Origin: Laetmonice hystrix
Lineage: Eukaryota
NCBI GenBank assembly: GCA_965235115.1
Contig: OZ249443.1
Coordinates: 9,424,001 to 9,488,000 of the forward strand
Reading direction: 5' to 3'
DNA: 64,000 nt
Notes under the pieces: generated by a model
What the model was told of the DNA's origin: nothing
Databases searched by the model: none
Seen by the model: only the letters and a program-made list of their open reading frames with translations
Made by a program: the position numbers and the translations under genes
Shown here: piece by piece, positions 18,401 to 64,000 of the stretch
Position numbering within the stretch: position 1 is the stretch's first letter
Layout: each line of letters starts with the position of its first letter

Positions 18401-18612
18401 GACTTAGTGGCGTCAATAACTCGTTATTACGACTTAATGAAGTCAGTAAGTCGTTATTACGATTTATCGTGTTCGTTTCAGAGAAAAAATGGTTTCAGAG
18501 AAAAAAACCGACTAAGTGATTTTTTTTTCTCTGAAACGAGTGCGATTAACTCGTAGTAACGACTTAATGACGTCATTAAGTCGTAATAACGAGTTAATAC
18601 CGTCACTAAGTC
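18401..18612. mobile_element. Foldback/MITE-like inverted repeat
   Basis: GACTTAGTGGCGTCAATAACTCGTTATTACGACTTAATG is mirrored at about 18550-18612; TCGTTATTACGA subrepeats occur inside. Confidence 0.6.
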
Positions 18613-37600: not shown

Positions 37601-38942
37601 ATTGCTTTTGTTTCTCGGACTCTGAAAGTTTGATCCCCAACCCGGAGGGGATGGTCTGTACCAAGAGAGCCATACTGAGTCTCATCGCCCGTATCTTCGA
37701 CCCCCTGGGGTTTCTCATTCCTCTCATCATGACAGCCAAGTTCATCTTCCAGGAGCTATGGTGCTTGGGGGTGGATTGGGACGAGGAGGTTCCTGTAACT
37801 ATTCAGACAAGGTTTGTCGGGTGGGCAATGGGACTAAAGTCTGCCTCTCAACTCAAGATCCCAAGGTGTTTCACAAACCGCGATAAATGGAAGGAAGTTA
37901 GTGGGAAACTCGAAATACACGCTTTCGGGGACGCTTCACAGAAGGGGTACGGTGCAGTAGTGTACTGTCGGTTGCCGGTTGGGGATGGCAACACTTACCA
38001 AGTTTCCCTAGTCATGGCTAAGGGTAAAGTAGCACCCCTAAAGAAAGTAACCTTGCCACGTCTCGAGTTGCTGAGTGCACTTCTATGTGCTCGCCTTGCC
38101 ACATTTGTGATGAAGGCCCTAGAACTGTCGCCGTCACATGTGTCTGTAACATGTTGGACCGATTCTACAATTGCCCTTGGTTGGATTCAAGGGGATTCTT
38201 CGAGATGGAAGCCCTTCGTGGCTAACAGAGTACGAGAGATCCAGGATCTCACAAGTCCATCTGATTGGAGGCATTGCCCAGGCGTGGACAACCCGGCAGA
38301 TATAATATCTAGGGGCTCTTCAGGTAGTGAGCTTGCCACTTCTACTCTTTGGTGGAATGGCCCTCAGTGGTTGAGGTCCAACATCACTTATGGTGACCTT
38401 GGCGGCAGGGTTAACGACACCCACGAACAGGAAGCTCAGGACAAAGATGACCTTACAGCCCTTAACGTTGAGTCTCATGAGGAGGCTATCACAGTCAGTC
38501 AGTACGGTACGCTGGGACGGGCCCTACGTATTACGGGGCTGGTTCTCAGATTCATTCACAATGCAAGGGGGAAGGAGTCTAGCCGGACTGGCGCCCTATC
38601 GCTGGAGGAACTGTCAGACGCTAAAGTGAAATTGTTCTCACTGGCTCAGGAGGCAGCATATGCCGAAGAGCTGCATTGCCTTAAGAAAGGCCTCCCCTTG
38701 AAGAGAGACTCTTCTCTCCTACAGTTGAAACCCTTCATTGGACCAAACGGGTTGCTAAGGGTAGGTGGTCGACTCCACAAATCACCGCTAGAATATGAGG
38801 AGAAACACCCTGTCATACTCCCTAAGGGTCATTTGACATTACTGTTGGTTCGCGACCAGCACCGAATGCTGAAGCATGCTGGAGTAGACACAATGATTTG
38901 CTCTTTACGAGCAACATACTGGATAGTGAGTCTCAGGCGGCT
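34678..38942 (+). CDS. BEL/Pao Gag-Pol, N-terminal part (Gag, Cys-His knuckles, protease, RT, RNase H, start of integrase)
   Basis: Motifs: LPKFDG..W.PFWDKF; CVFCEKTHPSHKC, CFRCLEPSHRAQSC, CNMCEGNHHAVLC; LFDTGS; KVRPVFDAS; RVPFG..ASPFLL; LYVDD; FGDASQKGYGA; TLPRLEL; WTDS; NPADIISRG; HRMLKHAG. The ORF-track stop at 38958 lies inside the LINE insertion. Confidence 0.95.
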
Positions 38943-40512: not shown

Positions 40513-41604
40513 GGCTAGCGAAGCGGGTTAAGCGAGAATGTGTTGCCTGCCGCAGGCAAGATACCAAAGCCTGCACACAGCCGTGTGGACCACTCCCATC
40601 GGAGAGAGTCACCGAAGCCCCCCCCGTTTTCGGTGACGGGCCTAGACTTTGCAGGGCCGTTGTTTGTTCATGATTTGCCAGGGCGGAAACTTTACTTCCT
40701 CCTGTTCACGTGTGCAGTGGTCCGAGCTGTCCACATAGAACTCGTTGACTCAATGTCACTTGAAGATTGTGTACTTGCCATTCGCCGGTTTTGTGCACGC
40801 AGAGGAAAAGTAGACACTTTCTATTCAGACAATGCCAAAACGTTTGTTGCTGCATCCAAGGTTGTTCAGACCCAGTTTGGCCTCCAAGCCCCAAAGTGGA
40901 AATTCATTGTGCCTCGCTCGCCTTGGTGGGGAGGCTGGTGGGAAAGGTTAGTTCGTTCAGTGAAGGGTGCCCTGAAGAAGTCTTTGGGTACTCGTTGTCT
41001 TTCTCGGATAGAACTCGAAACATGTTTACAGGAGGTTGAAGCCTGCATCAACTCCAGGCCTCTCACATTTGTTGGGGACGAAAGGGACAGCCCTACCCCC
41101 CTCACACCCTCTCATTTCCTGATCGGAAGAGGTGCTGGGGTCCTGCTAGAGATTGATAATGAGGCGCTCAAATCTGTATCCCCCTCCTTGTTCAGAGAAA
41201 GGTACACACTAGTACAACAGCGGTTGGAGTTGTTTTGGAGTAGATGGCGAAATGAATACCTCCGCAACCTCCCCACTTCTGTTAGAGGTACAAAGGGACG
41301 GTGTGACCTAAAGGTCGGTTCTGTGGTGCTAGTACAAGATGATCAAAGACCACGTATGAAGTGGCCTCTTGGTGTTGTATGTGAACTGTATCCTGGATCC
41401 GATGGGATCGTTCGAAGTGTGCGGGTGAAAACAACCAAAGGTGAACTCACTCGATCAGTGCAAAGGTTGCATGACCTCGAGATTGTTGAGCCTGTCAAAG
41501 ATGCTTGTGTTCCAGTACAGGAACCCCCAAATAAGACTGAAGTCACAGTCACCAGAAGCGGTCGTAGTGTCAAACCAAAGGTATTCGACGGGTTTCAAAT
41601 GTAA
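40513..41604 (+). CDS. BEL/Pao integrase and C-terminal domain (continuation of Gag-Pol; +1 frameshift in C8 run at 40618-40625)
   Basis: LAKRVKRECVACRR..PCGPLPSERVTEAPP / FSVTGLDFAGP..SDNAKTF..PWWGGWWERLV..INSRPLT..LTPSHFL..FWSRWRNEYL..KWPLG. Confidence 0.9.
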
Positions 41605-43200: not shown

Positions 43201-44539
43201 ACCCGATAACGTTTTGATTCACACCTACCACACCAGGGGGCGCTCAACGACCCAGAGCGTCCTCTAGTAATGCACAATACGCACTAGCGGATATGGATTT
43301 CCAGAAAAGGTCTATCGGCTTGGTTCGGAAACAGTTGTGTGATTTCGTCTATACTATTCTTGTATTTTATTGTTAGTCCTATATGTATAGTTCTATTATC
43401 GCTGTTCGTCAGTCCGCTTTTGGCATATCGTGATAAAACTTACTGCGCGGTGTGACGTTACTTAACTCGGTTATGACGTCTAACACGCTTGGTGGGAATG
43501 GTAATGTTTCTAGGGTTTCTGGAAGAGTCAGAGTAAAACTTTTGATATGTCGCATACTGACATGCCATTTGTTTTTTTGTTTTTTTGCTCTTATATTTGA
43601 CCCCTGACCTATATATTTGCTCATTATTGTCACAGGAAGACAATGACAATTGTCGAGTTCAGTTTTGAAGAGATCACGCCATGAGTTTAAGACTCCTGAC
43701 GTCAAACAGACTTCAGCTCCTTAGTCAAAACAAATAGGCCTAACTCGAGAGAAACTAGTTTGATGGAGCTGACTTAATTTATGAATGGTACCTTAAGAAA
43801 TTTTCATTACGATTTTGACTGTGATCTTTAATGTAAATTGTGAGGGTCGCGTGAGCTTAAAGTTGGGTTAAACGGCCAAATTACAGGCAGTATTTTCTTT
43901 TATATCCAGATTTAAAGGTGTCTAAAAAGGACTCCGTTAATTAATTGAATGTACCATTGTAAATATGATTCATATAATTGATGTGTATGGATCAACTAAA
44001 AGATGAAATGACACTTTCCAAAAAACACTTTAATCTTTAATATGCTAAACATAGCAATTATTTCGTGTAATTGTATCTGCAATTATTAGGTGTAATCGTA
44101 ATCCGTTTCTACCCCATCATCAAAGAACCGTGTTGCAGTGATAATCTGTACCACTGAAAGCACGAGCCTAATCTACTTACAGAGCATTCACTTTTACAGA
44201 CTACAGAATGAAGGAAACAAACCCATACATGTTATTTGATTGCCTGTATTTGGTTATATGTATTTTTTGTACTCGGAGTACACAAGAGTGTGTATCTCTG
44301 CATTATGATAGTTCTTCTATTATATACTATAAAACTGTATATGAATGGAAAAATAAAAGACGGAACAATTGATAGGCATTCTATACTTATATTCATTTCA
44401 TGTTTGCAAAAGCATCTCAGAGATTGGAATCGCACTGCCGTTAGTTGGAGACTCCGTCCTCGTCTTACAGTAACGCATACTTTGGTCGTCTACAAAATTG
44501 ACTTCAGTTTCGAGGATGTACCGAAAGGCCCCGCCAGGC

Positions 44540-44682
44540 TTGCCAATTCCTCCAAGTAGAGGCACGGGTTAAGGTGAGGCGACCGTCAAGTATTGCCGGG
44601 CAATACGACCACACAATCTGACGACAGAGGGCAGTGGAAGCTTCTCTCCACGACATCACGCCATCTAGGAATAGATTAAGGT
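44540..44682 (+). mobile_element. Possible RTE-like LINE 3' end
   Basis: DRGQWKLLSTTSRHLGID* resembles the DR..W C-terminus of RTE ORFs. Confidence 0.3.
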
Positions 44683-47600
44683 CAAAAGTGTAAAATGACT
44701 TAAAGAAGGAAACTGTCTGCTAAAAGCCTTTAATAATCTGGTAGGTTCTTTTCTGGATGTTGTGTTTTATTTTTTCGGTTTTTGTTTTTCTCATTTAACA
44801 TGAGGAAATGGCATGTAAATATTCTTCTGTAGCATGATCTGGTCCTCTTGACAGCAGATGTCTGGTTTAAACACATGGCTGACAACTTTTTAAACTTTAA
44901 TTACTGTAACTTGTATTTCTGGTTATTATCGCGATGTCTTAGAATGACGTCATACCTAATAACCACGTGACCTGCTGACGAACGGGAACGGAATGTCTGT
45001 GGGAGAGAAGGGCAAAATCATTTATTATAAATATATACCCATTACCTCTGATACAGCTACTCTGCATAACCATATACCCCTAGAAGTTGGCAGATTCCTA
45101 TACAGCCCGTTACAGACTCTTTCGAAATAAATAAAGGGCTACATGGAAGAGTAGGAGTGTACATGTAAATGGGCGATAGGAACATCAAATTAAAATTTGA
45201 CTTTTATTAAAATTTCCACTATTGTTATATCGTAGGTGATCTGTTTAAATATTATTTAAAGAGTAGCATAAGAAAACGACACATTTAGGTAAAAAGGTGC
45301 AAAGAGTTAGACTGAGACATTGTTAAGAACCCAAGGCAACGCATNNNNNNNNNNNNNNNNNNNNNNNNNNNNNNNNNNNNNNNNNNNNNNNNNNNNNNNN
45401 NNNNNNNNNNNNNNNNNNNNNNNNNNNNNNNNNNNNNNNNNNNNNNNNNNNNNNNNNNNNNNNNNNNNNNNNNNNNTATATAATATATTATATCTGCACA
45501 ACACTGCGGCACCTTCTTACTTCTCGCAGTCAAAGTGAACGACCAGAAATACATTGAAATTATAATTTTAAAAAATGAAAGTATATGAATATATTATGTA
45601 TGAATTTTCATCCATATTGTACAAAACTATGCCTGTGAATGTTCGTGCAATATAGAAGAGAGTAGCAGCCTCGCCTGAGAATCAGCGCGGATTCATTGAG
45701 CATTTATAAATTGGTGCAAATGACGAATGTAATACTATTGAAGCCACTGTAAATCACACAACTGACGTACATATCGTCATTTGAACCATTTATACTCGAC
45801 ATCTCGATATCTGCGTATTCTGCGTAGTACTCGTTAACGCATTTGTCTTTGACACATAATAAAAAGACAATATTTCATATCTCATTACATAAAGAAAGGT
45901 GTCAATTACATTTCCATATAATCCTGAATGGAGGTTGCTACCTTATATATCCACATTGCACGAACCACAATGACACTTTCTCACACATAAATATACATTT
46001 GTTAGTGTTTAAGACAAAGGCTAAATGTCAGTGATCATGCCTCCTCTTCATACGATGTATATTTGGTGCTTGCACTAGGTTTTAGTATTTTGAAAAATGA
46101 ACATTTACTGCTTTGAACCGCCTAAGCTCAATCACCCCAACTTTTAATAGAGATCACTTCCGCCATGGAAGTAATATTCGTAACGGGACAAGGGAGAGCT
46201 GGCGATTCGAGTAAATGAATATCTTCAAAATACTCGTAGAGCGATCGAGAAGCAACACGTAGATACCCACGGTTTCCTCCAGGGGGCGCCTTACTCGGCT
46301 AATATGCTGGAAATATCCAAACACAGCTACTTGTACATGGCGAATTTACCAACTTTCACTCTTTCCTTTAACGCGTCCAGAGAACATCATTTTGGGTGGG
46401 CATTTTTAAAAAAGAAACTAAAATGCGACCAGAATGGAATGGAACTGTATGGAATTTTCTCCACCATCTTGGCATACTAAAAGCTACTCGTTTCACAGTC
46501 ATCCCGTGTTCTTCGAAAAAAATCTGCGCAACTTCAAAGGCCATGCCGACGTAAACGTTATGAATCGAACATCGAGGAGAAGAAAATTTCAGGAGGGTTA
46601 TTTTTGCCATCACCGAGGAAAGCGACGTCAATAGTAACGAGGAACGCTGAAGCCTGCACTTCCTCCCAAGGTCATGGCTTCACCTTGGTCAATATTGTGA
46701 GAATTCCAAACATTGGCAAGAGGAAGAGATCATGAAACTCTTCTAATGTACCAATACTACGTACTAACTGATGGTAAGCAGACGCTCAATTAATGCGCGA
46801 TAATTAGGAGGTATGAAGTAATAATTATATCTTCTTTGTCATCATATGGTTTTCTGGTTCTTCTAGAAAAGCCTTTAATCTGCTATAGGCCTACACGATT
46901 TATCAGTCCAAATAAAATAATGAAAATATTGCACATATTCATGTGTACAGCCTTCACAAATCTACACAGCAGCAGGAAACACGAAGGCTCGTTTTTAACG
47001 TCACCGTATTTATATCCATTAATTTTACTCGTCTCCCAGGCGCGATGATTTCAACGTACGCCATTCGCGCACGCTCCGCAAGGATGGGTGACATTCAAGG
47101 CGTTTTGGAGCGAGTATGGTTACAAGGCTTTCTGACCTTTTACTTAAGTAGTCCCTTTATCTGATACGTCATTACGGGATACTTTAAAGTCAGAGAAGGG
47201 CAAGCCAGGCTCACGTATTCGGTACTCAGAGGATAACCTACAGGTTTTAGGAGAATGCCATTCTGACACCCAAGAAAAAATAATGGCAAGCTATTGATGA
47301 GATCTAAAATTATACAGGCTATATTATAGTGATTTACAACATGCGAGAGATTGCTAGACATGCATTGTTAGTCCTGTGAAAAGCTGTGCTTCAACCTGAT
47401 TAACCTGAAGAAAACATACCCGTAGAAGTTATATTTACCACCCTGTTTCGGTTGCTTATTTCTTGATACCTGCTTGATGTGAAGTAAATCGACTTGATAT
47501 AATTATTGTATAATCTTCCCGAAATCACAACAATGGGTAGTATGTACAATACATCCACGTTCTTTGAGGACTTAGCTTTTATTGTAGGCTACCATTGCCG

Positions 47601-48268
47601 CATCAATGAATGGTAACACGACCAGCATGTATCTTCTGAATCGGTGAAAGTGATGGATGTTATCCCTGATCAGTGTTTCTAACAGTCAGCAGCTGACAGA
47701 GGTTTAACTAATGTCTGCGTCCTACAGCTCACGTCAGGTCGTGTCCGTGACGTCATCAATGAGCGATATTGAAGGTTTATATAACGTAATACCGCCCATA
47801 TACAATGTACACGATAGAATGCCTCCTTGGTGACGTCACGATCAGACGACACGGATGGGAGATTACAAACGTTTGACAATGGCACAGAGCCTCAACACAA
47901 AAAGAAATGTCAAAGACGGATTAAACGGATATAGGCCTAACGTCCACGACCCGGATATCACAACCAGGTAATCTGATGGATATATTTTAGATGTATGCAA
48001 TTTGACAAACGTTTTTTTTCTAAAAGTCGATGTTATTGCGGGAGGGGTTGTTGAAAAGGCCTAGAAAAATATATGCGTAATCAGAAGATTGTTTTTACAT
48101 AGAAAGATAAACATAATCCATACAGTCCTTAAAGCTCTACTTCAACATCCAAGACAGTCTTCCTAGTTAATACAAATGGACCTGCCACCACCCTGCTGTC
48201 TTGCCGACATATGAGTTTATGAAATTGAATGATACATGACGTGTGACCGACGACCGTAAGAAACTTAC

Positions 48269-48340
48269 CGTGATCTCGTTTCTGAGCATGACCTTGGAGT
48301 TTGTTCAGGAAATCTAGCACGGCTCTCAGGTTAGTCCTGT
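48269..48340 (-). CDS. 72-nt exon (D)RTNLRAVLDFLNKLQGHAQKRDH
   Basis: Acceptor atgatttcag, consensus donor gtaagt; paralogue of 62573-62644; contains KR. Confidence 0.75.
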
Positions 48341-51300
48341 CTGAAATCATTCCAACAAAACTCCACGTGTAAACACCATGTATACAACGTAATATAATGT
48401 AACTAGCAATAAGTAGAATATGTAATTTATTGAATTTTTATATATCCATGAATCTTCAATTTAAAAATTACCATGATTGGAGTCACGTTCAAGACCAGAA
48501 ATCTCGTTTCTTCCTTCTGAAGCAGAATATTCGGGATGTCACAATAGCAAATATGTGATGGCACAATTTCGCATCAAACGCGGTGACACATAAATGACTG
48601 TATAAACGCACAACTATAACACAGAAAATTATTTGCAACGTCACAATAACATAAACGTGATTGCACAATGACGCATAATTCTTTATGTGAACCCCGTTTC
48701 CCATTCCTCAACATTTTCTTATTATTAGATTGCAATGATTGTGTTATTTCAATTCGAGAGTCCTTTCCAGTTCACCGGAAGGTGGCCACCTATAATTCCT
48801 TGACAAAGAGCTGAGGCGACGAAAGGTGTTTACTGTACAATAGCCAGTTAAACATCAGCCACCAACCAGAACTCCAACAATAGCCGACAGCGGAGACGCT
48901 AACAGTAGCTGTACATAATTATCAGACTTTGTCTCTGGATATTATGGATACTATAATAGTGGGGACTAGGTTCTGCATCTGCTGCATCGCAGGTAATTGT
49001 CAACGTGAGAAATTTAGCATATTACGCGTAAATCAAGCTGACGCGGTGAAAATTATTTTAATTAAGAAAATAGAATTAAAAGAAAGAAAACGATCCGCAT
49101 CACATTTGCCAAAAAATGCTTAAATGCACCACCCCCACCCCCAAAAAGGACAAAGAAATGCTCTTTACTTTAATTATTCAATGACTATAGTATTCACAGA
49201 ATAGCGTTCAACATTGAAAGTACAGACTATCGAATACACAGACAATAAAAGAAAACAAAAAATGAATACGGTATGTTGAATAGGACTAGGTCTGTACCTC
49301 TTTCACCCCGAAGGTGTCGAGCGAATGCTACATGACAGAACAAAAAGGTTAGATATTCATTAAATACCAGACGAACGTAATACATCTATTTCTAGTTAAA
49401 TCTGATTTGCATCTCTTGAGATATATAGTGAGCATAGTTTGGGAATGCTAGGCTACGTAAGTATTCACTGTGTTTCATTGATGTAAACTAATTCAGCACG
49501 AGACTCTGTGTGAAATGCCTGGAATATCGTGCATATATCACAGACACTGCTTGGATGATTTATAAATCTGCGCGGATTACACACAATACCGTCTTTCATA
49601 TTGCAGCTAAAGGCAGATTTCCCTCGGGTAAAGCTGTAGCCTAGGTATCATAGAGTAATCCGTTAGGGGATCCAGTCAACCATTAATAAGATCTTCACTC
49701 ATTATGTGTAAACATTAGGTATCATACTAGGCTTAAAGGGATCCACCTCAGTTACATTGGGTGATATTTTCACAACAGCAAGTTATAACAGTTAGCAGTT
49801 ATACTTTATAATAATGTACAATATAAACAAGGGGCCGATTCGGTATGTACCTTCCACAAGACCAGCATTTCTCACTCACTCACTCACTCCTCCCACTGAC
49901 TCACTGACTGACTCTTAAGGCTTCTAAAGTTATTTTTTTAACCGGTTGGCGAAAGAGGAGTAAATTGAGAACAGGGCCAAGACCAAGCAGAATTCCTGTG
50001 ACACTTTATCATACTAGTTAACAAAATAGAGATATAGAATTGTCCTAACTATCTCTGAGAACGAAGGCGCCGCAGCCCTACCTTCGTTATGTGTCAATTT
50101 TCTGAACGTCATGTGTCCTTGGAATGGGTGGATTAATGAAGTGGTAATTGAATTTAAGTGTTTAACTATAAAAATACTGAACGAATATAGCTCCTGAAGC
50201 GGATATTCGCAGTAATATGACAATACGAAAGGTACAGAAGAAGCACATCAAGAGGAAAAAGTAGAAGCCACTCGTACTCATGACATACTGCCCCTAGACT
50301 TTAGAAGATAAGTTTAATACTTTCGACTCCAATAACACCGTGGTAAATATTTAGCATTAAGTGCTAAACCCACCAAGGCGATTCCCCTTGCGACGGCCAT
50401 GCGGTTTTTGATTTAATGGTGGAATTTCACTCTGAAATTTTTCCGGGCTGGCCTTCTCCGTTTCAGGAAATGGGTTCCATCCTTTAATCTCAAAATTACA
50501 GTAAAATAAAAGGGTGATGTCAAAATCGCATGGGCGTCGCAAGGGGAATCGCCTTTGTGGGTTCAGCACTTTAAGTCTAGCATGTGTAGAATATTGAGAC
50601 GATATATGCCGATAATGAAGATTAAGTAATAGTTGACCAACATAACAACAAAGACCACGTACCTTCCTGTCGCTTGATTGTTCTGTAGGGCACGGGGCCA
50701 TCTGTCGTGGACAAACACATATGTATGATGAAACGTTTGCTATCTCATAAAATACAACCCACTCATCAAAACGTGTCAGCAGAGACTTCTTTCCGTTTTC
50801 GTGTTTAACTGAACAATATTTTTATATGGAACGCTTTGAGACAAGGAGGTGACCTCGCATCTTTAACATGAACGTGACGTCATGAAATATAACAAAAATT
50901 AATCATTCTCTCTGGATACATTCAAGAGAACCTTTTTTTCAGACAAGGCTGTACATCCGCGCGCACTATTTGTCCATACAAATGACTTGTGCCAAAACAA
51001 AGAATAACCTTTATAATACATATACTGTACATTAATTCAGAAGAAGGTTCCGCCTACATTTTCCATGTCGTATACCGATGATCCACTTTGATAATTTCCT
51101 TTTGATTCTCCTGACATATTATGTACTTAAGCATCGAGACTATACCGTCCGGGTTAGTAGGTTTCCCATGCCGTGTCAGTCTCAGTGATTCTTGGTATAT
51201 TAGTGGCGACCTGCTCCCCTTCCCCGGAGAAAGTCAAAGCAACATAAAAATGGTCCATAAAAATAGGGAAGAAATGCGACCTCCCTTCCTGTAGAATGCG

Positions 51301-54300
51301 ATCAAATAATAATATTCAATGTTGAGGTCTTTCAGAGGAGTCTGGCTAACATTCAGGCCTCTGAGGTTTGGCCATCCAAATCAGGAGTCAGACTCCGGCC
51401 CTCTGTGTGTGATTCTCGCGGACACGTTATTGGAAACAATTGCGTTTCAGTCAACTTTTCCTCAGACATAAGCATGATGATTAGTTATTGTGCACCCCGT
51501 TCTTAAATGCATTCATCTCATGCCCCTAGCTTCCAGGGAAATAAAAAAAAAAGTATTTCTGTAACACTACTTTTATAGGCCTAGCGCCCAGACATGCTTA
51601 TTATTACGAAGAGCCTACTGCAACAACAATGTTGTATTACTGAAATGCCAATTAAATGAGTACGTAAGAGTTGTATAGCATCCCTTCAGGTTCAGCTGCA
51701 TTGTGATATACCTTAAGAACCTTAAAGCAAATAAATCAATTAGAAGATTCCGATGTCTACATCTCACATCCCAGCTTGTTTAGATCGAACAGGTGTGATG
51801 TTTCTTGAGGGTTTAGGTTCTAGGCTCTAGGTCATTACGCTGCTGCTGCGTTCGATCTACCGTTAGTATAGCTAAATCTTACTGTATGTTAGAGACTACC
51901 GACGATGGTACCCACTCACTACAAACCTGGGTTAGAGGAAGCCCAGTTTCGTTCTACTTCAGAGGTTTCTCCTGGAAGGTAATTTAAGGTTAGACGAGTT
52001 AGGAGTTTCTTATACCAGGACATATTGGGACTGACCCGCACAACGCCCTTTACTTAAACTTCCTTTGAGGACCTTCTGGAACTATCCACTTGCTTCCTTA
52101 GTCCATGCCCTGGTTCCTCGCGTCTTCTGCCGTTGTAATGCGTCCAATGCAAATGCGTTAAATAGGGCGAAAGATGGGGTTGGGAGTTTGCTGGAGCCTG
52201 GATGGGAAGGGTTTTAGCTTTGAATGAAGAGAAGGGGGGAAACGGATTAATCCTAAGCGGTAAGCTAGAGGTGTTGTGGAGTTAGCGGGTCTCGCCGGTT
52301 AGTTAACACATTCAGCGATTTCTCTCGTTCCCGCCACTAACCTGGGTTCCTGTGTGTTGTACATGGGGGAGTACTTGCAGAATTATAACCTCTGCTTTCT
52401 GGAAGAAAAGCACGCAGCATATTTTGCTTTTCGCTCGGAACAAGTGTCCCTAGCCAATGGGCTAACGACCCGTCCGATTTACAGTGCCCTTCTCTTGTCC
52501 AATCTTATTCCGTACCTCCGACTTGTTAAACAAGCAGCGTTTGCCCTTGGACCTGTGTGAAAGATGGGACCTGTTCTCACCCAGAAGTTAAGAGAGACGG
52601 TGCAATCTCAGGTAACCTCCGTCTTGTCAGCTGTGTGGCTTTTCACGCTTCAGAGGCGGAACACCATTTTGTATCTTATCGTATCAACAAAGCCTGTTAC
52701 TTTGTTATGTTCCTGGGAGTACTCATAAAAAAAGCCCTGTGTCTGTTTCTGTTTCCTGAAAGGCTGCGCCAGGACAGGCAAGAGAGGACGCGGATCCATT
52801 TGGAACGAGAATGTGTCGACATTGCTGAATAAGATCAAAGCAAAGATGTGTGTTCCCTAGATGTGAACTCTGCTAAGTCGGGAAAATATTGACGCCAAAT
52901 ATGAAAAAGCGATGAAGCGGCTTTATTGGGACGCCAACAAAATCGGTTATAGTAATCAGAATCGTCCTAGGAAAAGCCAGCGTTTGTAAACCGTATTTTT
53001 TCTGCTTCACGTACATTTAGTGGCCCAAGCGCCTACTTAGTAAGGGATCTTATCATTTTGGAAGAAAAAGAGCACCCTAAATTAAGACTGATCTTGCATA
53101 TCAGCCAAAACCGTTCTTACAGGTACCTAAGAGATCTTGGTAAACTTGGTAAACAAAGAGGATGGAAGAAGAGAATTGCATTGGTGTAGAGGAATTAAAA
53201 TCAGGTCATTACCTTAACCACTATGACACCATAATATAGGCCTATATAGGTAGGACGCATTGTCCCATGAAAAATGTATACATATAACTATGTAACAAAA
53301 AGGACAGGTACTTAAAATCTAAAATGAATAGAGCTATAATCCATAGGGACAATAGCTATTCATTTTTGTCCCACCAAAGATGATACATTGCTCATTTACA
53401 ATGACATTGATTTCTTTAATGTACGTCTTGGGATGTACATGATTAAACACCACAGACGAATGACATGAAGACTACATATCCTGTTTTCAGATGTATGAGG
53501 AAAGGGCATTTAACGCCTTTGAAGAACCTCGCGAAATGAAGCAAATAAGCGGATATAATCTTCGCAGCCGTGGCACATGTACATGGGCATTTCGTACATT
53601 ATTTGTATCCGTACCAGAGAGACTAGTCTATAGAGCCCTACGACCAGTCTCCCCGGTCAAATCAATGCATATATAAACACAACGTCAGGGCCATAGCCAG
53701 GCGGAGGCAGAAGAAACAGCTGCCACAACTTTGGGCCAGTTGAGTTTGAGGGAGGGCATGACTACAAGTTTCCCTTCGCTTTGCCCAGGGTTTTCTCTGC
53801 TTTCCTGGCCTGACTACGACCCTGGAAGAAATAAAGGGGTAAGCAGAAGTTACAGGCCCCTATGGAATCCTTGACGTAGAAGGATAGAATGAAACATTTA
53901 GGGAGTGTTGTGGCCGCCAAGGGGTTGAAGACCTCACCTTCGTTCCTCTTGTAAGGCAAACTGCCATCTGCAAGGCCGGAAACAAATCACGAGATTAAAT
54001 TAGATTAGAACAACCTGAGTATAGGATTCATAGAAACATGGCCACTCAACCTCTGTTTGGTCCGAGTTCTACTTAAAGTTAACAACGATGTGTTCTCCGA
54101 AAGAAAAATTATTCCTCTTTTGCCAGTAAAAGAAAGAGAAACGAAACCACATTCGCTGAGATGGAGGTGTCCAGAGTTCTGGAATACATTCTTTTATCTA
54201 GCTGTTTTACCTTTGGTTGCCTGCAGCACATAACAAGCGAAAAAGTCTACCTGGAATAATTTTATTAAGTATTTTATATTATGAGTTGATTTGGTGACAC

Positions 54301-57300
54301 AATTACGATAGAGACTATCGATAGTCAGGAGGCTTAATGTTGAGTAGAATTATATCTAGTATTATGGTACACTTATACTGCAATCATGAAGGGATCAGAA
54401 ATGAAACAGATGTTGCAGTGCATCAAATGGATAGTAAAGTTTCTCTTCATTTTCGTATATCGGAAGTGGAAAAATCTCACACCCAAGACACCTATAGTAT
54501 AAGATACCAAAAGGTGGATTCAAGCGGTGGTCTAATAGCGATAGAGTTGGAAGAATTCGTGATTATGCCCGAGCATTTCTGGCACAGAGGTGTTCGCATC
54601 ACCATCTAAAAGAAAATATTTCGTAAACTAGCGCAACTACCTTCATTACGTTTGAGAGTGTCACTCAAACTCCGGTACGGGATACTTCCGTCTGTAAACC
54701 GAGTGAGTTTAAAACGTTGTCACATATTATGATAAACGCCTTCTACCCAAACGTATCTTTAACTTTGTAGCTAATTTTCACAACAGATTATCAACTAACC
54801 GATAGCCGACTACATTTATCATGTTTAATGATAACTTAGATACACGGTACAGGCTAATATATTGAGCACGGCTATTTAATATTTAATAGTTTTAGTAATT
54901 AGATCTGGTTCCTAGCGGCCCTAGTATCCACGTGGAATTACGTCCATCAACGTCAAAAAGAAAACATGTCAAAAGCTGGTGCAAATACCTTCATTACGTT
55001 TGAGATTGCCACTCAAACTGCGGTACGGGATACTTCCGTCTGTAATACATAGTTACTGTGATCAATTGCTCTTTTCTAACACATTGGTCCTTAATTTATG
55101 GTTTTTTTTTAATTATCATAGTTTATTTAATATAATTTACACGACGGTGCTAAATGTTGTAGACGTCATCCTTTTAAAAGAAATATTTCGTAAATTGACG
55201 CAACTACCTTCGTTACGTTTGAGATTGTCACTCAGACTCCGGTACGGGATACTTCCGTCTGTAAACCGAGTGAATTTTAAACGTCAAATACCATGATAAA
55301 CAACTCCTATTCAAACCTATTCGGTAAGCTTCACTCGTTATATCCTGGCAATAAACGAGAATAAGTAATGATTACATTGGAACGTCTTACTCCTTACACC
55401 GCAAAGAATAGATTACCCAAATGTACACTATATTAGGAATTAAATAATAATTATTTTGTTTACAAAGTAATAGCTAAGACGGCGGTTCTGCGAGAAGTTG
55501 GACAGTTTCTAGTGGAACAATAATTTCTAGTGGAGTTGTGAATGTCACGAGTGTAAAGAAACCCTTTCAGAAACTGCTGAAAGTACCTTCGTTACGTTTG
55601 AGATTCTCCCTCAAACTCCGATATGGGATACTTCCGTCTGGAATCCGATTGATTTGAAAACGTCGTCACATAATTACTATCATAACTGGCTCATTCCAGA
55701 CATATTATTCTATATTTTGTGAAGTCTCCAACATGACAAAAAAAGATGAGATAACGTAGGTTCCCTATATTAGGAGATAAATAGTTGACGCGTTTTTAAA
55801 AAAATATAATTAAAATGGCGGTTCTGAAAGAGGTTGGACAGTTTCTAGTAATTTCTAGTCTACTGGGGTTGGTGACGTCAACGCATTATAGAAACCTTTA
55901 TAAAAACTGCTGTAAGTACCTTCATTACGTTTGAGATTCTCCTTCAAATTCCGGTATGGGATACTTCCGTCTGTAACCCGAATGATTTGATAGCGTCGTC
56001 ACATAATTTCTATGATAAATGGCTCTTTCCTAACAAAATAGTTTTAATATTATGAAGACGTTAACGTAACATTTTAGCCATTGACCAACTTAGCACACTA
56101 ATCTTGCGTATCTTGCCTTCGTATATTGGGGATACTTCGGTAATTTAGAAGGTTTCATTCCCAACACCACCCATTGGCACATATTCATGTTGTGTCTGTA
56201 CACGGCGGTCTTAACATTGAATTATTGGCACCACTAACTTAAAGAAAACTTTTAGAAACAGATACCTTCATTACGTTTGAGATTAGCACTCAATCTTCGG
56301 TACGGGATACTTCCGTCTGTAAAACGAGCGAAGTTAAAAGGCTCTCAAATATCGGGATAAACGGTTTCTATCCACACATATTAGTTATTCACTAACTCAT
56401 TCTGTAGTGTTAAATTATGCTACTTGTGTAGTATCAACATGACTAGGACGGTCCTGTACACAGCTATAACACAGATCATGGACGGGATTAATAAAACCAC
56501 CACCTTAAAGAAAATATTACAGAAATTGCCCCAAATACCTTCGTTTCGTTTGAGATTGTCACCCAAACTCCTGTATGGGATACTTCCGTCTGTAAAGCGA
56601 GCGAATTTAAAACGTTGTCAGACATATAAGTTATTTATAACGTTCCACCCGGAATTAACTACAAACTAGTTGGGCCCAAAGGGGATTCCTTGAGTTATAG
56701 TGTCGATAACGAACAAAAGTAAATCGGGTGACTTTATTTCTCGTACAATGGCTTTAAATATGGCATAAGATTGACACAATGAAATATGGCGCAAGGTAGA
56801 CGCAATGTCGTCCACCATACAACTCAAAGTTTCACTTGCGCACGCGCCTGCGCTGTCGTGTCGGAAGTGAATGGATTGCGCTGCTTACTAAGTTACTCTA
56901 ATGGCATTACTGTTTGTGTACAATTTGTCACACTTGGTACGGAAATAATGGCGGTCGGATGGCAACATTCGAGGGGTTTCGTATTAGAAGCCAATTCATT
57001 GGAATCTAGTGTGGACGACTCTACAGAAATAACGTTGGCAGACAAATAAGTGTCTCGCTTCCTACCAGAAAATATTGTGGAAGCGCGAGAATTTGCGTTT
57101 GATAAAACACTTTTTCTGGGGTATTTATGTGGAAGAGGTATATGCACTTTTTTGGAAAAACAAACCCTGACACTACAGAGAGCTGGTGCTTGCAGGCAGA
57201 CAAACAAAGTGACAAGTATCTGACCTGTCAGAGTATTTGCCCCAAGTCCAACCTTAATAAGTTGGAGTCACCTTTCTTTCAGTAAATGGTGATTCCAATG

Positions 57301-60300
57301 AATTGCTCTGCATATTGAACTGTGAGGAACAGTCAACTAAGTGAACATTGGTATTTCATCGTCCGCCATACTGTGAGCCATATTTCGGCGGCTCGCTCAG
57401 TGTTTTCGCGGATTGCGTTATACAGCCTCGACACGAGCTGCGTCGGCGAGAATGTGTCATTGTGTCAGTGAAAGTGATTGGTCGAGGAGTCGTGGGATGA
57501 TGAATGAGCCGCTCTATACGTTGGTCGTGTGGGCACACACACGACAAGTGTTTGTTGGCAATATCTTGCCTTGACAAGTCCTCGCTGCCCTATTCCTGCT
57601 TCTGATCGTCTTCCATGAATAGCTTATGATTTGACAATGTCTGACTCTGAACTGATCCTTTCTCATGACATTAATTGTTACCTTAAAGTAACAGGAAGCC
57701 ATATCTACAGGACGAGTCACATTATCTTTTAACTGATGAACGGTGTCGTATGTCTCGCAGAGACATGCAACGGGTTCATCAAAGGCATACGTATATCAAC
57801 ATGCATAAACAGAACTTGGTATGGGGAAATACGCATCGTTCCATGACGTCACAAGTCACTTGTTTGATGATTGCCTACGCGACGTCATGAGCTAGTACAT
57901 GACGTCATACTTGGACAATCGGAATGCTACACGGTACATATATCTGGAAAGCACGAATACTGCTGACGTATAGAGATAGACATTAGTCATACTTCTCATA
58001 AAAAAAAACAATCAAATGGAGATCGAGACCCATTCCGGAACGAGACTGATGAAAGGGGCGACTGTCACTTTGTGCTAGACGGAAGCACAGCTTACCTTCG
58101 TTTCTTTTATACGGCAACGAACCATCTGTAATGAAAACATTATTGGCGTGAAATAACATGGACAACTTCCTGCCGAGAACAAAACGGTTCTTACAAACCA
58201 AAGCAACTCGGTTAGTGAGAACAAATAGGTGAATGATGTGTTCCGATGACAGGACACGCGCGCGATTATCCGGACGGTAAAGCTCTGATTGTTCCGGGAC
58301 GCGCTCTCTGGGCCGGCTTGGTGGGCGATAATCAAAGACCTCTGCGTTGTATCCGTCACCCTTATTACGAGGACATTGTACCTGGGTGTCATGGCAACGA
58401 GCAGTGACTGCATAGATTGAGCTGATTGGCTGCGTGGGATAATATAAACATTATAGGACACATGTAAACAGAGAGTGTATAGCCAATATTGCCATTAGTT
58501 CAAAATCATGCGGAAAGTATATTTTTCTACAAACGGAAACAATAATTGAGTTGAAAATCAAACATGACTGTATTGTTCTGGGTCAGTCACTGGAGGGGGC
58601 ATTATTAGAGAATATTGCACGTTGCAAGGGTGACTTTAGTGCTTCATGCTACAATAATAAGCTCGAGGTGATTGCAATGTCTACCTTAGTACATTGCTGA
58701 ATTATAAACCAATACGGAAGTAGGCCTACTGGTTTTTCTATAGCTGGCCTGACGTATATCCTTTCAAATGGTTGGTTACATCGATTTCTTTTCAGAACTC
58801 CTGATCCTGGTCACGAGTTATCACTTGACCTTTTTATTTACATAAAAAAAATCAACATGCCGAAGCTATATTTATTTTGTATTTTATACCGTCCATTTAA
58901 ACATGCGGCGCTGATATCGAAGAAGCTTTTATGCCTAAGTCGACCAAAAATATTACAATGTCGCATGATTCGGGTTTGCAAATCACCCATGAACTAAAAA
59001 TGGACGCATAATGTAAATTATAGCGGCACCAGCGTGTACTAACGAAACAAAATATAAATGTTAGCCGCACCAGCGTGTGCTAACGAAACATAATGTATAT
59101 CAAGATTCCATGGATGAAAACCTTCGCAGTAATTATCGTGACTTTTATAGGAGGCCGTGGCTTCATTAAGAGGTTCTAGCTACTATGTTGCCCACCAAGT
59201 CACGTTCAAAGAGAACCGTTTAACAAAACTTTTACTTGCCATTTTCGGGCAAAGGCGAATAAATAATTTTCCCAAAGAACTTTTCTTCGACCTACCTTCA
59301 TTTCGTTTATGTGAGTAGGACACTTGCTCATCTGAAAGAGACAAAAATATGGAAATTGTCACTGAGCGATTCCTGACGACCAAAGAAAAGAGATACTTTC
59401 TTCTACTGATTAGCGGCAAATGTGAACTGGCATTTGACTCAGCATTTTGCTTTAGAGGTACAAGAAAGCTGAGACGGCGATATGGCGGATGGCGGGGAGG
59501 GAAGGGGGCAAGGAAAATGAGGCCTTAGAAAGTCCCAGATCCGATTGCTTGCTCAGTAATTAAGGTGTGACATTGGTCCATTTGGCCAAACGCGCCGTTT
59601 GCTTTAAAGATCCATGTACGGTACTCCGTGTGGACTCGACTTTTTGACAGATTTGTAGCCCGCCCGATATCTGACATCAAAAATAAATCATTTCGCTCTC
59701 TCTCTCAAAACTTTTCAAAGGTTTGGCTTCAACAGGAAGTACGGTCAGGTTGAAATTTGTTACGCTTCAAAATTACTGTCTGTAGCAGTATACGAAGTGG
59801 GAATCACCATGTTTTTAATGGATACAGAATCCGGCTTCTTATTTTGCCCAGCTGTAGGCTGGCAAAAAGAATAAATATAACAAAGGAATTGATTGTTTCA
59901 AAACTGACTTCATATACTTCGAACAAAACAAGTTAAATCATTATAGTCCCTGTCCATCTTTTACGTTGGTCATTCTATTCCAGGGATTTGTCATAATAAA
60001 GTTTTCATACTCAATTAACAATAATACTGTGGCCATAGGCGGAATAATGTCTCTGCATTAAGGCAAAAAGGAATATAGAAAAGATATCTTTTACACACGA
60101 GAAAAGTTTTGCGATTGAAACTTTTTATGCGTTCTTTGTGACTAACAGCTCGACGTCACCATGCGTATTTAAAGAAAAGATCTCTATAGCTAAGATGAAA
60201 GACATGAATAGAGTACAATACAATTTCAAATAACTGTCTTGAAATATTCACATCCGAACGAGCAGTAGCAAAGAGAAATATGTTCTTGGGAGGTTCATTG

Positions 60301-62644
60301 TATAAATTTATGTTCATTAAGTTTATAGAAAGACGGAGGGTAGGAATTGCATTCAGGTAATATCATTCGTAGCATTGGGAATAAATGCGTTTGAAACATA
60401 ACGGTTTAAACGCTCGCTTTACTGTATTCTTCTCAAGATGTTATAGTATGCGCGTTCTATCTGCTCGTGCCATTGGGGGGGGGGGGGGGGTGCCATACGG
60501 TAGTCCGTATGGAACACGTGTTCCATATGGACGGATTTGATTGTACACGTTACTGGGTGATGCGACCTTAACTATGAGGGCCTATAGAAACGCCGGATCA
60601 TGTATTATAAATTACGCTAGGCTGTTCCAACAGCAGGCCCCACCCCCCAGTCTGCTACCACTTTGTAAGCACCGTGACTGTAGAAAAATGGGGGAGGGTG
60701 TCCACTTGACAAACCGCCCAGTCACGTGACTCTGCGGATAGACTATAGCTATCGGAACGACCAAGCCATTTCCGGTGTACTTTGCATTCGGAAACTAGAA
60801 TTCTAGTTCCCGAAAGCAGAGTAAACCGGAAATGGCTAGGTCGTTCCGATTGAGACTATAGGTACAAGCTAATAAATGCTTATTTGTTGTTAATTCTTGT
60901 TTACTGTTGGCTCTTTTCCTCAAATTAGAAATATTTTCATGTATTCAATGTATTCATGCCCCAGCAATCGAGTTCCATACTTTCCCGCAGTGAAGTACCC
61001 TGTTACGTACACTGCAGTACCACTGCCGCCATCTGTCGGGATAGGTTGCCACTGAAAGATATGCCACCTTTCACGAGTGGAAACATCAACCTTTAAAGAT
61101 AAACATGCTCCCGAGTGCTGAGGCTTCTTTGTGGGAACCTCGGCTTAGTATTATATGAATCACCTTAAAACGCAGACTACAAGTAGATAATGCTGTTTTT
61201 TTTTACATTGTCATTTTGCCAGGAATAGACATCAGACACAATAGATTTAATGTCGCTTCAATAATGTCTGATGATCTCAAGCCATTCCTGGCCATTCATA
61301 TTTGGTGGCATCCTGGAGGTAATACAATGCCTGCTAGAGATACCGGATGGACCATTGTAGTTACCAGAAACTCCTGTATCCATGCAACATTTAATCTCAG
61401 CGTCTACCACTTGCCGATACCCCCTCCCATCCCCATTTTATTGTTAGAGCTTTACGCCCATACTTTGCGTCCATCATATTAAAAATTGTCAGAATATGCC
61501 GCGGTCACCGTCAACGTGTGTGAGTGAATTGAAAGTTTACGTCGTGTCGACAGTCACGTCAAGAAATTGGCATTTCTCTCGTTATAACCAAACTAATAAT
61601 CCTCCTGTGAAGTATCATTAATCCTTTGTATTTAGAATGTAACGTTTTACTCGGCAATTGTTAAATAATATTGTTCTTTGCTTAAAGAATGTCAGAATCA
61701 GTTATTAAAGAAGATTGTTCGTGTCACATCAGCCCTCCGGAGAGTATTTATCGCCACTCTGTATGTTGCAGTCGCCCCCATAACAGATAGATGAATTTAA
61801 CCAAAAAATCTACTGCGTCCTTAAAAATACTTGTTTAAATCTGGAGTACCTTCAGATCCAGTCGAGTACTCTCATCCTCTCACGTGACACGTGATCCCAC
61901 GTGAACCGTGAGTGTCACGTGTGTCTAACGTCACAGTATATTTTCACATTCAAACTACAACTTAATACGAAAAGCTGATCAGACGTACGCCTACTTCAAA
62001 CCTTTCTTAACACAAGAAGTCAACTAACACAAATTGATCTCTTGAACAACTAAAACTAAGGATGCACGCATGCAGCTTGATTCAGGCTTCTCAAGGCGAC
62101 ACAGTACGAGTTCAGTTGTGCCCGCAGATCCTGCTGAGCGAAAATCTCGCGTCGTATTCTCTACAGCGAGATATAGCGGGAGCCACTGCGCATGGGCAGA
62201 GTGAAGGAAAGGGAAAGTTATATGCAAGGAATGCTAGATGCCTGTCAGTCAGTAAGAAAATTATGTCCTTTTTAACGTAATGTTTTGATCAGTTAGTGGA
62301 ATGCAACTACTGCTAACCCTTATAGTTGCAAAAGCTACTATTAAAAGCTTTATCATGCATGTACAGTACTGAGTACAAGCGATGTATTTAAATATCCTAC
62401 GTTCAGAGGTTCTGCGCAAATCTAGAAGCCATTAAAAATCTTATGTGTGATATCCAAAGTGAGATTGGAAGCAGTAGAAAGGTGTGAAGCTTGGTTAGAG
62501 ATTGGGTGTGGTCTAAATGTTGGTAGATTTGTTTACAGAGGCATTCAAGCGACCGTTGAACTCCCTACTGACCTTTCGTTCTCTGTAGGAGTTCGTTGAG
62601 GGTTTTGTCCAGTCGGAGAAGAATGTCCCTCAAACTGTCTCTAT
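48269..62644 (-). CDS. Micro-exon gene encoding a repetitive, probably secreted peptide precursor (partial; span of supported exons)
   Basis: At least 15 AG/GT-bounded exons, all multiples of 3 nt, all phase 1-1, with no stops when joined. Recurrent DG(S/P)(I/L/V)PY..KR(N/Q)E motif; nucleotide variation at conserved residues is synonymous. Confidence 0.8.
48496..48516 (-). CDS. Candidate 21-nt exon (E)GRNEIS
   Basis: Acceptor attctgcttcag; weak donor gtcttg; contains RNE. Confidence 0.3.
49298..49327 (-). CDS. Candidate 30-nt exon (A)FARHLRGER
   Basis: Acceptor ctttttgttctgtcatgtag, donor gtacag; phase 1-1 and open, but no homology to the other exons. Confidence 0.4.
50082..50117 (-). CDS. 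36-nt exon (G)HMTFRKLTHNE
   Basis: Long AG-free pyrimidine-rich tract ending ccattccaag; donor gtaggg; NE-G end as in the repeat exons. Confidence 0.6.
50360..50570 (-). mobile_element. About 210-bp Harbinger-like MITE (intronic), TTA TSD
   Basis: TIR AGTGCT(A/G)AACCCAC(C/A)AAGGCGATTCCCCTTGCGAC; TTA on both sides; interior homologous to 22148-22356. Confidence 0.75.
50663..50701 (-). CDS. 39-nt exon (D)GPVPYRTIKRQE
   Basis: Acceptor tttgtccacgacag, donor gtacgt; clear diverged paralogue of the DGSIPYR..KRNE exons. Confidence 0.8.
51927..51971 (-). CDS. 45-nt exon (G)ETSEVERNWASSNP
   Basis: CTAAC branch-like motif plus ttaccttccag acceptor; donor gtttgt; ends AACCCAG. Confidence 0.55.
52342..52398 (-). 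CDS. 57-nt exon (E)SRGYNSASTPPCTTHRNP
   Basis: Acceptor cttttcttccag, donor gttagt; open in phase 1; ends AACCCAG like the next exon. Confidence 0.55.
53938..53967 (-). CDS. 30-nt exon (D)GSLPYKRNE
   Basis: Acceptor tttccggccttgcag, donor gtgagg; same peptide as 58096-58125 with six synonymous codon changes. Confidence 0.85.
54641..54691 (-). CDS. 51-nt exon (D)GSIPYRSLSDTLKRNE
   Basis: Acceptor tttacag, donor gtagtt. Confidence 0.85.
54989..55039 (-). CDS. 51-nt exon (D)GSIPYRSLSGNLKRNE
   Basis: Acceptor attacag, donor gtattt. Confidence 0.85.
55208..55258 (-). CDS. 51-nt exon (D)GSIPYRSLSDNLKRNE
   Basis: Acceptor tttacag, donor gtagtt. Confidence 0.85.
55587..55637 (-). CDS. 51-nt exon (D)GSIPYRSLRENLKRNE
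   Basis: Acceptor attccag, donor gtactt. Confidence 0.85.
55920..55970 (-). CDS. 51-nt exon (D)GSIPYRNLKENLKRNE
   Basis: Acceptor gttacag, donor gtactt. Confidence 0.85.
56266..56316 (-). CDS. 51-nt exon (D)GSIPYRRLSANLKRNE
   Basis: Acceptor tttacag, donor gtatct. Confidence 0.85.
56539..56589 (-). CDS. 51-nt exon (D)GSIPYRSLGDNLKRNE
   Basis: Acceptor tttacag, donor gtattt. Confidence 0.85.
58096..58125 (-). CDS. 30-nt exon (D)GSLPYKRNE
   Basis: Acceptor ttttcattacag, donor gtaagc. Confidence 0.85.
59296..59331 (-). CDS. 36-nt exon (D)EQVSYSHKRNE
   Basis: Acceptor tttttgtctctttcag, donor gtaggt; KRNE end. Confidence 0.8.
60743..60861. mobile_element. About 120-bp palindromic MITE-like hairpin (intronic)
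   Basis: Arms ATCGGAACGACC(A/T)AGCCATTTCCGGT..ACTAGAA are mirrored around GAATTC; CTATAG at both ends. Confidence 0.65.
62573..62644 (-). CDS. 72-nt exon (D)RDSLRDILLRLDKTLNELLQRTK
   Basis: Acceptor ttttgattgcag, donor gtcagt; same length and DR..LR..L..L.K pattern as exon 48269-48340. Confidence 0.7.
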
Positions 62645-63139
62645 CTGCAATCAAAACCAGCAAGACGAGCTGTAAGCAGCGCCACCTGTTGTCATATCTA
62701 AAGCTTGAACACAAACGAAAGTTCTAGAATGAGGACGTCACAATGAGCGGACGTATGGTATCAGTCAACATAACGAACGCTATTGTCTGTTCGTCCAAGC
62801 AACCGAAGGCGTCAGAAAAAGTAGCTTGAGGTTACGATGCTGGCCTGTAATAAATAATCAGATGAAATCGTTCAGTGTCCGTGTCTCATTATGGTCCTTT
62901 CATTCAGTCGTCTCTTGATAACCATAGAGACTCGAAAGCAACCTGTCATAATGTCCTATCTTTTTTTCGTAACAGCTGGCACCCTCGGCTAAATTTTTGC
63001 GTGCCTTTCCTCTGTGACATTTAGACCCAAAATATATCTGATTGATATCGTCTAGATACTTGTACTTGATTTTACAAAGACTTCTGTAGTTCACATAGTG
63101 TCTATGCCTCATAGCTATGTCTATGCCTCATGCGTGTAG

Positions 63140-63196
63140 TTTTTCTTTCTTTCTTTCTTTCTTTCTTTTCTTCTTTCCTTTCTTTTCTTTCTTTCT
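63140..63196. repeat. (TTTC)n-like microsatellite
   Basis: Pyrimidine tandem tract. Confidence 0.85.
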
Positions 63197-64000
63197 ATAA
63201 AATGGACCGTGTGTCAATCGATAGATATATCAAGGTGCCGGGGCGTTGCCCTACACCCCCTCATAATTATATCGATATGGATGGTGGTAAGAGTCAGGGA
63301 GGCGCGCCAGGTGTGGGGACTGTTTGATGACGGTCGGTTACACGTGACGTCGCCTACAGACAGACTTTCAACACGACTCCATTTACTGTCGTCAAAACCT
63401 ACCGAGATAGTCAGGCACCTTCCGTGGGGCAGTATGGGCGACACAAAACCGAAACAAGATCCGGTAAAACCAATCAGAATATGTGGCAGTGAAACATGAC
63501 CAATTCTGAACAGAGATCGGAGGGTTTAGCCTAGGATGAGTTGGAGAGCAAGTAAATTGTTCATGAGAACGCCATTTAGCTGGAGATTCAGGGAACAGAG
63601 AGGGACTTAGGAACTAATTTGTTCTCTGTTCCGAAACTTTCGTAAAGGCAACCAGATAATCCGACACTACTATGAAAGGTACGGCCTTTTCTGCCAGCCA
63701 ACCTATAGGGCTGTCATGAAACCCCCTCCCCCTGAAAATCCTGGATGCATTACTGAGTTTGGTGTGCGCGTAAAGACATCTCATGACCAATCACTTAGGG
63801 GAAATAATGATAGCGACACGCTCCGAAATATCATCAAAACAATACGGGTTACAACCCTTCTCTATTAATAACCTAACCCGTGATGGCGACCATTACTGTT
63901 GAAAATGTAAGGAATTACGGAACAAATAGAATTATATTTCTTATTTTTTCCTTTGTGTGTTTCCCTCTCTTTCATGCGTTCTCCCCTTCCATCCTTCCCT

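Follow-up and report, generated by a model that had tools for sequence, protein, structure and literature searches.

A micro-exon gene of the annelid Laetmonice hystrix encodes a probable orthologue of the Platynereis PY proneuropeptide, with one peptide per exon

What kind of gene is built from a row of exons that are each only 30-72 nt long? The question is raised by a 64,000-nt stretch of the genome of the annelid Laetmonice hystrix (GenBank assembly GCA_965235115.1, contig OZ249443.1, positions 9,424,001 to 9,488,000), hereafter the window, which is G000:C8:9424001-9488000 in the 627-Mb, 35-contig assembly that we searched. A first-pass annotation had proposed that at least 15 minus-strand exons, all of phase 1-1 and ending in G, encode a secreted, KR-processed precursor of many peptides, with one peptide per phase-1 micro-exon. 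It did not recognise the peptides and offered neuropeptide, pheromone, venom and mucus peptide as options. We found that the gene is real, apparently unannotated, and a member of a known peptide family rather than an orphan. The locus is very probably the annelid orthologue of the 'PY' proneuropeptide of Platynereis dumerilii, which bears out the proposed multi-peptide precursor, supplies the missing identity of the peptides and, through homology, favours the neuropeptide option.

Both a reading of the sequence and a scripted scan gave 16 exons on the minus strand between 62644 and 48269 (window positions, as below), each preceded by AG and followed by GT, so that the proposed array was recovered at its coordinates as one open frame. 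All 16 internal exons, whose lengths are given in order in Table 1, are multiples of 3, lie in phase 1-1 and have G as their last base; the split codon therefore always encodes D, E, G or A. When joined in phase 1, they yielded 248 codons free of stops, with KR(N/Q)E at the end of 11 exons and DG(S/P)(I/L/V)PY at the start of 10. The acceptors have pyrimidine tracts and the donors are mainly GTA or GTG. On the plus strand of the scanned region (47000-64000), the scripted scan found no such motif exon. Each module exon carries one PY peptide together with its dibasic site, and the intron falls 2 residues after KR, within the GA(C/T) codon for Asp.

The span 48269-62644, which had been taken as the extent of the gene, turned out to be too short at both ends. 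A signal-peptide exon ending in phase 1 had been expected upstream of 64000. A simple screen that reached 11 kb upstream did not detect one, as exon 1 lies just beyond the screened stretch; a screen for Met-initiated hydrophobic exons of phase 1 located it 10.5 kb beyond the window end, at G000:C8:9498494-9498584 (L012:584-494), leaving a first intron of 11.8 kb before exon 2. Exon 1 has the start context aaacATGG, a hydrophobic core of 14 residues, a cleavage motif of small residues and the end G|gtaagt in phase 1, and its alignment with the Platynereis signal peptide starts at residue 1. At the 3' end, a last exon at 48060 (GLFNNPSRNNIDF, followed by a stop) was at first chosen on splice context. 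It was dropped because DIPFP follows KRDH in all the homologues and an exon starting at 44996 encodes DIPFPF in the right phase, placing this family hallmark directly after KRDH. The 3' untranslated region runs to about 44.88 or 44.75 kb, as marked by ATTAAA (44901-44896) and AATAAA (44771-44766), at most 190 nt past the stop. Both gene ends are fixed by their homology to the family.

The full model occupies about 30 kb of the minus strand and comprises 18 coding exons, 879 nt and 292 residues. The protein consists, in order, of a signal peptide, an amphipathic helix A, a spacer, eleven PY modules, the products of three doubtful small exons, a helix B ending in KRDH, and the DIPFPF tail. The eleven KR-flanked modules are the first KRNE, two copies of NEDGSLPY, seven different 15-residue units of the form NEDGSIPYRxLxxxL and one NEDGPVPYRTI. 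A run of 132 N lies in the last intron (45345-45476), and a second one of about 131 nt at 21486-21616.

Table 1. Exons of the Laetmonice hystrix PY gene that lie in the window (exon 1 lies beyond it; positions are those of the window).
Exon	Position	Strand	Length and description
exon 2	62573..62644	-	72 nt; conserved amphipathic helix A of propeptide; together with exon 3 aligns to Platynereis helix A
exon 3	59296..59331	-	36 nt; spacer, ends in first KRNE
exon 4	58096..58125	-	30 nt; short PY module DGSLPYKRNE
exon 5	56539..56589	-	51 nt; extended PY module, core RSLGDNL; first of seven tandem exon-plus-intron units
exon 6	56266..56316	-	51 nt; extended module, core RRLSANL (internal RR)
exon 7	55920..55970	-	51 nt; extended module, core RNLKENL; intron flanks nearest to those of the next unit (73%)
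exon 8	55587..55637	-	51 nt; extended module, core RSLRENL
exon 9	55208..55258	-	51 nt; extended module, core RSLSDNL; top module-profile match, 45.9 bits
exon 10	54989..55039	-	51 nt; extended module, core RSLSGNL; preceded by the shortest intron of the gene, 168 nt
exon 11	54641..54691	-	51 nt; extended module, core RSLSDTL; last tandem unit
exon 12	53938..53967	-	30 nt; second short PY module, peptide identical to exon 4
exon 13	50663..50701	-	39 nt; DGPVPYRTIKRQE; DGPVPY likewise ends the series of PY copies in Platynereis
exon 14 (uncertain)	50082..50117	-	36 nt, or 84 nt if starting at 50165
exon 15 (uncertain)	49298..49327	-	30 nt; basis: frame and AG/GT only
exon 16 (uncertain)	48472..48516	-	45 nt; basis: frame and fair splice sites
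exon 17	48269..48340	-	72 nt; helix B, ends in KRDH
last coding exon (18)	44956..44996	-	(D)IPFPFVSRSRGY and stop at 44958-44956; DIPFPFVSRSRGY; acceptor gcccttctctcccacag, phase 1

The assignment to the PY family rests on comparison with the Platynereis precursor (GenBank KF515930, UniProt V5TCR8; Conzelmann et al. 2013; sequence in Additional file 7, PMC3890597), which runs from a signal peptide and helix A through KRNE, DGAVPY, KRNE, DGSTPY, KRNE, a short spacer and DGPVPY-KR to helix B, KRDH and DIPFPFAPTK (PMC3890597). The joined Laetmonice product is collinear with it, and the KRNE-DG junctions are contiguous and in the same frame in the Platynereis cDNA. With blastp, residues 1-103 matched residues 1-106 of the Platynereis protein; identity was 42%, the alignment began at the first Met, and helix A of one fell in register with that of the other. 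With phmmer, the 292-residue model scored 70.8 bits against Platynereis PY (E 3.5e-14), and a hidden Markov model built from 11 family members scored 93.1 bits against the model (E 6e-21; Z = 5.77e9 for both). Helix A (exons 2 and 3; pattern L..aLaRLD.aL.E) gave a local alignment score of 50 that was reached by none of 20000 shuffles (p < 5e-5). Helix B with KRDH (exon 17) gave a shuffle p of 5.5e-4, and cross-comparisons were not significant. The features that characterise the family are all present, namely a signal peptide, helix A, KR-flanked NE-DGxxPY repeats, a helix B-KRDH-DIPFPF tail and overall similarity. The two precursors also share the opening MD.K of the signal peptide and the position of DGPVPY as the last copy. 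They differ in that Platynereis has three to four short PY copies in 144 residues, whereas the 292 residues of the Laetmonice product hold two short copies, one DGPVPY copy and seven extended copies with a 7-residue insert after PY.

Several other routes did not lead to the family. Full-text literature searches for the peptide strings returned no paper, and the Platynereis match came from the supplementary FASTA file of PMC3890597. A profile of the module (17 positions) found no module-bearing protein among 1.84 billion representative proteins, which lends indirect support to the earlier expectation that gene finders would miss this gene. Its only matches, P0001 and P0002, were low-complexity sequences and false. 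The module profile missed the true family because the modules of the relatives are few and short. When single 23-residue exons were compared with Platynereis segments by BLASTP, no match emerged, and Smith-Waterman alignment with shuffles was used instead. An exon-by-exon search of the genome with the family profile returned only open reading frames (ORFs) in minisatellites on C4, C7 and C18, the micro-exons being too short for this route. Two of these spurious matches (G000:C4:26899772-26901533 and G000:C7:5556205-5556635; L020, L021) have several open frames, with ORFs of 120-560 aa.

We examined the array for signs of selection and for further copies. A profile of the 51-nt module had seven matches in the whole genome, all of them these exons; the degenerate pattern GxxPYKRNE+G matched the two 30-nt exons only, and the reversed control matched none. 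The gene is single-copy in the genome. Across the 13 scaffold codons of the seven 51-nt exons, the proportion of synonymous differences (pS) was 0.32 and that of nonsynonymous differences (pN) 0.002, with every variable scaffold site synonymous. Exon identity between the tandem units was 82-94%, as compared with a mean of 58% across 75-115 nt of the adjoining intron. Exons 4 and 12 encode the same decapeptide even though 8 of their 30 nt and 6 of their 9 whole codons differ; their flanks are about 55% identical. Among 25 single-nucleotide polymorphisms (SNPs) in 53900-59400, all from one sequenced individual, the sole exonic one (59305) is a synonymous Arg change in the KR of exon 3. Taken together, the array exons are coding exons under purifying selection, and the seven 51-nt exons arose through tandem duplication of exon plus intron.

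To place the gene in its wider family, the mature Platynereis sequence was used as a query and returned P0003 (UniProt V5TCR8) and four nereidid-like homologues, in which the helices are invariant and the number of modules ranges from 1 to 4; NEDGSIPY itself recurs in one homologue, P0005. The 2013 paper on Platynereis had found no PY orthologue outside that genus (PMC3890597). Profile searches added P0008 to P0013 (loci L022 and L023), small secreted precursors on transcript-type contigs in which the signal peptide and both helices are retained and the spacer between the helices is acidic or Ser-rich, devoid of any PY module. At the C-terminus these six carry (K/V)RDHDIPFP, which reads KRDHDIPFPF in P0009-P0013 and begins with VRDH in P0008, an exception to KRDH, which nearly the whole family conserves; helix B-KRDH together with DIPFPF was found in 8 of 11 family members. 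A full-text literature search for DIPFPF found no paper. P0008 bears a transcriptome shotgun assembly accession of the gregarine Ancora sagittata. We take the host of this gregarine to be Capitella, and P0008 is probably a host transcript rather than a gregarine one. Since P0008-P0013 have no modules and keep the helices and RDHDIPFP, the PY array fills a variable spacer of an older precursor. Among the sequences compared, only the Laetmonice lineage has the insert of 7 residues behind PY and the seven tandem units.

How the precursor would be used can be outlined from its features. In the homologues, which come from transcript-type assemblies, each ORF runs uninterrupted along an intronless contig of 0.6-1.4 kb, and therefore the KRNE-DG junctions that introns split in Laetmonice are contiguous in homologue mRNA. 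If the exons are spliced as modelled, the precursor would enter the secretory pathway and lose its signal peptide, prohormone convertases would cut at twelve KR sites, and a carboxypeptidase would trim the ends. The predicted products are two NEDGSLPY, seven distinct NEDGSIPYRxLxxxL and one NEDGPVPYRTI, together with an N-terminal helix A propeptide, a helix B fragment beginning with Gln, and DHDIPFPFVSRSRGY. The predicted peptides end in PY, L or I, and they are not amidated, as no KR has a preceding Gly. Further cleavage, down to the ancestral octapeptide, might be possible at the invariant Arg that follows PY and at the RR of one copy; there is no basic residue upstream that would favour such a step. 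The gene would presumably be expressed in neurons. In Platynereis, PY mRNA rises from about 4 reads per kilobase per million (RPKM) before 48 h to 125 RPKM at 72 h in whole-body RNA-seq, and expression persists (PMC3890597).

Since all internal exons are of phase 1-1, any subset of them can be skipped in frame, and skipping of such symmetric exons may vary the peptide mix. An extension of this idea is that the locus is a splice-selectable peptide library, in which the eleven micro-exons are combined differently per neuron or life stage and the four-residue core of the seven extended modules is under diversifying selection. We regard this as speculative and rather doubtful. If true, it would amount to variation like that of micro-exon genes (MEGs) inside a neuropeptide gene, and a cluster of cyclic AMP response elements (CREs) at the locus could tie expression to activity.

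The CRE palindrome TGACGTCA occurs nine times in the window, as compared with 0.74 expected, and none of 100 shuffles reached nine. Eight of the nine sites (43697, 44945, 47748, 47831, 50875, 55873, 57844 and 57900) lie within or just 3' of the PY gene (43697-57907), one of them 4 nt past the stop codon; the ninth is at 18568. The 30 kb of upstream sequence that we covered contains a single palindrome. The sites are not copies of one repeat, as they have no flanking sequence in common. About 190 nt upstream of the start codon (L012:740-830, minus strand) we noted tcacgtgtgacg, in which an E-box CACGTG overlaps a half CRE TGACG; a TATA box is not apparent.

Three other explanations of the array were weighed. 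One possible explanation is that the conserved signal of the family is helix B, the C-terminal DHDIPFPF peptide or both, with the PY array as lineage-specific filling of the spacer, a cargo or a co-released accessory. The position of the array in a variable spacer leads to this view, with the conserved tail or helix peptide as the ancestral ligand. Moreover, P0008-P0013 dispense with the modules, the KRDHDIPFPF of these precursors is unchanged except in P0008, and the nereidid-like homologues vary in module number around invariant helices. However, the codons for DGS(I/L)PY and KRNE vary only synonymously over nine copies, which would be odd for a mere spacer, and this explanation and that of PY peptides as ligands are not mutually exclusive. 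We consider it a tentative alternative that deserves attention. A set of secreted peptides with a role outside the nervous system, for example as antimicrobials, pheromones or peptides of mucus or epidermis, appears unlikely. It would fit the lack of amidation and the whole-body origin of the Platynereis data, in which epitoke males showed 53 RPKM and females 4.3 RPKM. On the other hand, the authors of the Platynereis study regard PY as a proneuropeptide and place it among precursors frequently confirmed by mass spectrometry, and its onset at 72 h coincides with that of most other neuropeptide genes in the same table (PMC3890597).

The array could also be a decaying or silent relic, either a pseudogene or exon-like repeats within an intron of another gene, given that no RNA run was found for Laetmonice hystrix and no annotated module-bearing protein in the libraries searched. 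This is highly improbable in view of the intact frame of 292 codons over 18 exons with every AG/GT kept, the scaffold changes that are synonymous only, the much better conservation of the exons than of their flanks, and the end-to-end collinearity with expressed orthologues. We prefer the assignment of the locus to the PY proneuropeptide family, against which the following points weigh. In the family as a whole, conservation is strongest in the helices and KRDHDIPFPF rather than in the PY modules, which are missing from P0008-P0013. Exon 1 is a putative signal-peptide exon, a role assigned to it from hydrophobicity and homology only. The splice signals of exons 14-16 are weak to modest, and the homologues show nothing that clearly corresponds to these exons, which could be chance open stretches between AG and GT. 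The acceptor of exon 14 at 50117 is a weak AAG, with a better one at 50165; its 3' end AACGAAG|gt resembles that of the module exons, and its link to the NE-GSSxKR of nereidid homologues is a loose one. Of all the donors, that of exon 15 scores lowest, and the homologues offer no equivalent of this exon; the GRNE..LER of exon 16 is loosely like the PRNESLER that opens helix B in homologues. In the core of the 51-nt modules, pN (0.27) exceeds pS (0.18), an excess over four codons only that is not statistically secure. Searches of sequencing runs with the array and the 3' end found three DNA-type runs from one sample and no RNA run; the DNA contigs of those three runs showed SNPs only and no splice joints at the locus, so that no junction was seen directly. 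As no RNA run of the species was found, we infer splicing, processing and exon skipping from the genomic sequence. In the literature searched, we found no function or receptor of PY peptides.

A build of one peptide per exon is known from unrelated genes. In the periviscerokinin (Capa) genes of beetles, the introns between the coding exons are all of phase 1, one peptide-bearing exon has been amplified one to four times, and alternative splicing is documented in some species (Veenstra 2019, PMC6585902). The Laetmonice gene shares with them the phase-1 introns throughout and the single peptide per amplified exon. In contrast, the beetle peptides are arthropod PRXamides of an unrelated family on far fewer amplified exons, whereas Laetmonice has eleven peptide exons, mostly much smaller; its peptides lack the PRXamide character of periviscerokinins and pyrokinins, so that the architecture is alike and there is no membership. 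The MEGs of schistosomes encode secreted products by strings of 3-81 bp exons with long introns between them (PMC10526429). Here too, the Laetmonice gene is similar in having mostly very short symmetric exons (sixteen of 30-72 nt, phase 1-1) and a product that is predicted to be secreted; however, the flatworm products are host-interface secretions and not KR-processed precursors, and the likeness is architectural only. Symmetry of their exons permits in-frame skipping in schistosome MEGs. In the caerulein precursor genes of Xenopus, every copy of a small bioactive peptide has a small exon to itself, and mRNAs differ in the number of copies. Caerulein is a vertebrate skin peptide of the cholecystokinin/gastrin type with one to four copies, and it is not homologous to the Laetmonice PY gene.

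On the plus strand of the window at 34678-41604 there is a BEL/Pao long terminal repeat retrotransposon, with an ORF of 1426 aa containing DUF1759, reverse transcriptase and Peptidase_A17 domains; further ORFs for reverse transcriptase and for integrase/DUF5641 follow downstream, possibly from two nested or broken copies. A 5.3-kb satellite at 11434-16700 has a 23-bp unit (ACCCCGCCACACGGCCCACACTA) with higher orders of 46 and 69 bp, a GC content of 73% and a strong skew of C over G, and a tandem array at 30517-31077 consists of 11 copies of a 51-bp unit with 91% matches. Elsewhere in the assembly, the mitochondrial contig (G000:C35, 16826 bp) has all genes on one strand in the order cox1-N-cox2-D-(atp8)-Y-cox3-Q-nad6-cob-W-atp6-R-H-nad5-F-E-P-T-nad4L-nad4-C-G-M-rrnS-V-rrnL ... 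nad1-I-K-nad3-S-nad2. We take this to be the conserved annelid order except for trnG, which lies between trnC and trnM and not before cox3. The contig starts with about 2.1 kb of non-coding sequence (L014:1-2100) made of four units of about 512 bp.

What is noteworthy in this gene, whose family was already known, is its exon-per-peptide build, for which beetle Capa is a precedent, and its lineage-specific expansion. The Laetmonice locus and ten homologous sequences extend the PY family beyond Platynereis, and they identify the two helices and KRDHDIPFPF as its real hallmarks; the PY peptides form a lineage-specific cassette within the variable spacer. With eleven peptide micro-exons, this is an extreme exon-per-peptide neuropeptide gene, as far as our literature search showed. 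Exon-by-exon protein searches fail on this gene, and similar ones may therefore be absent from annelid annotations. In this gene one can see directly how the copies of a peptide become more numerous and more diverse when symmetric exons are duplicated in tandem, and the gene allows one to ask whether the peptide mix is tuned by exon skipping.

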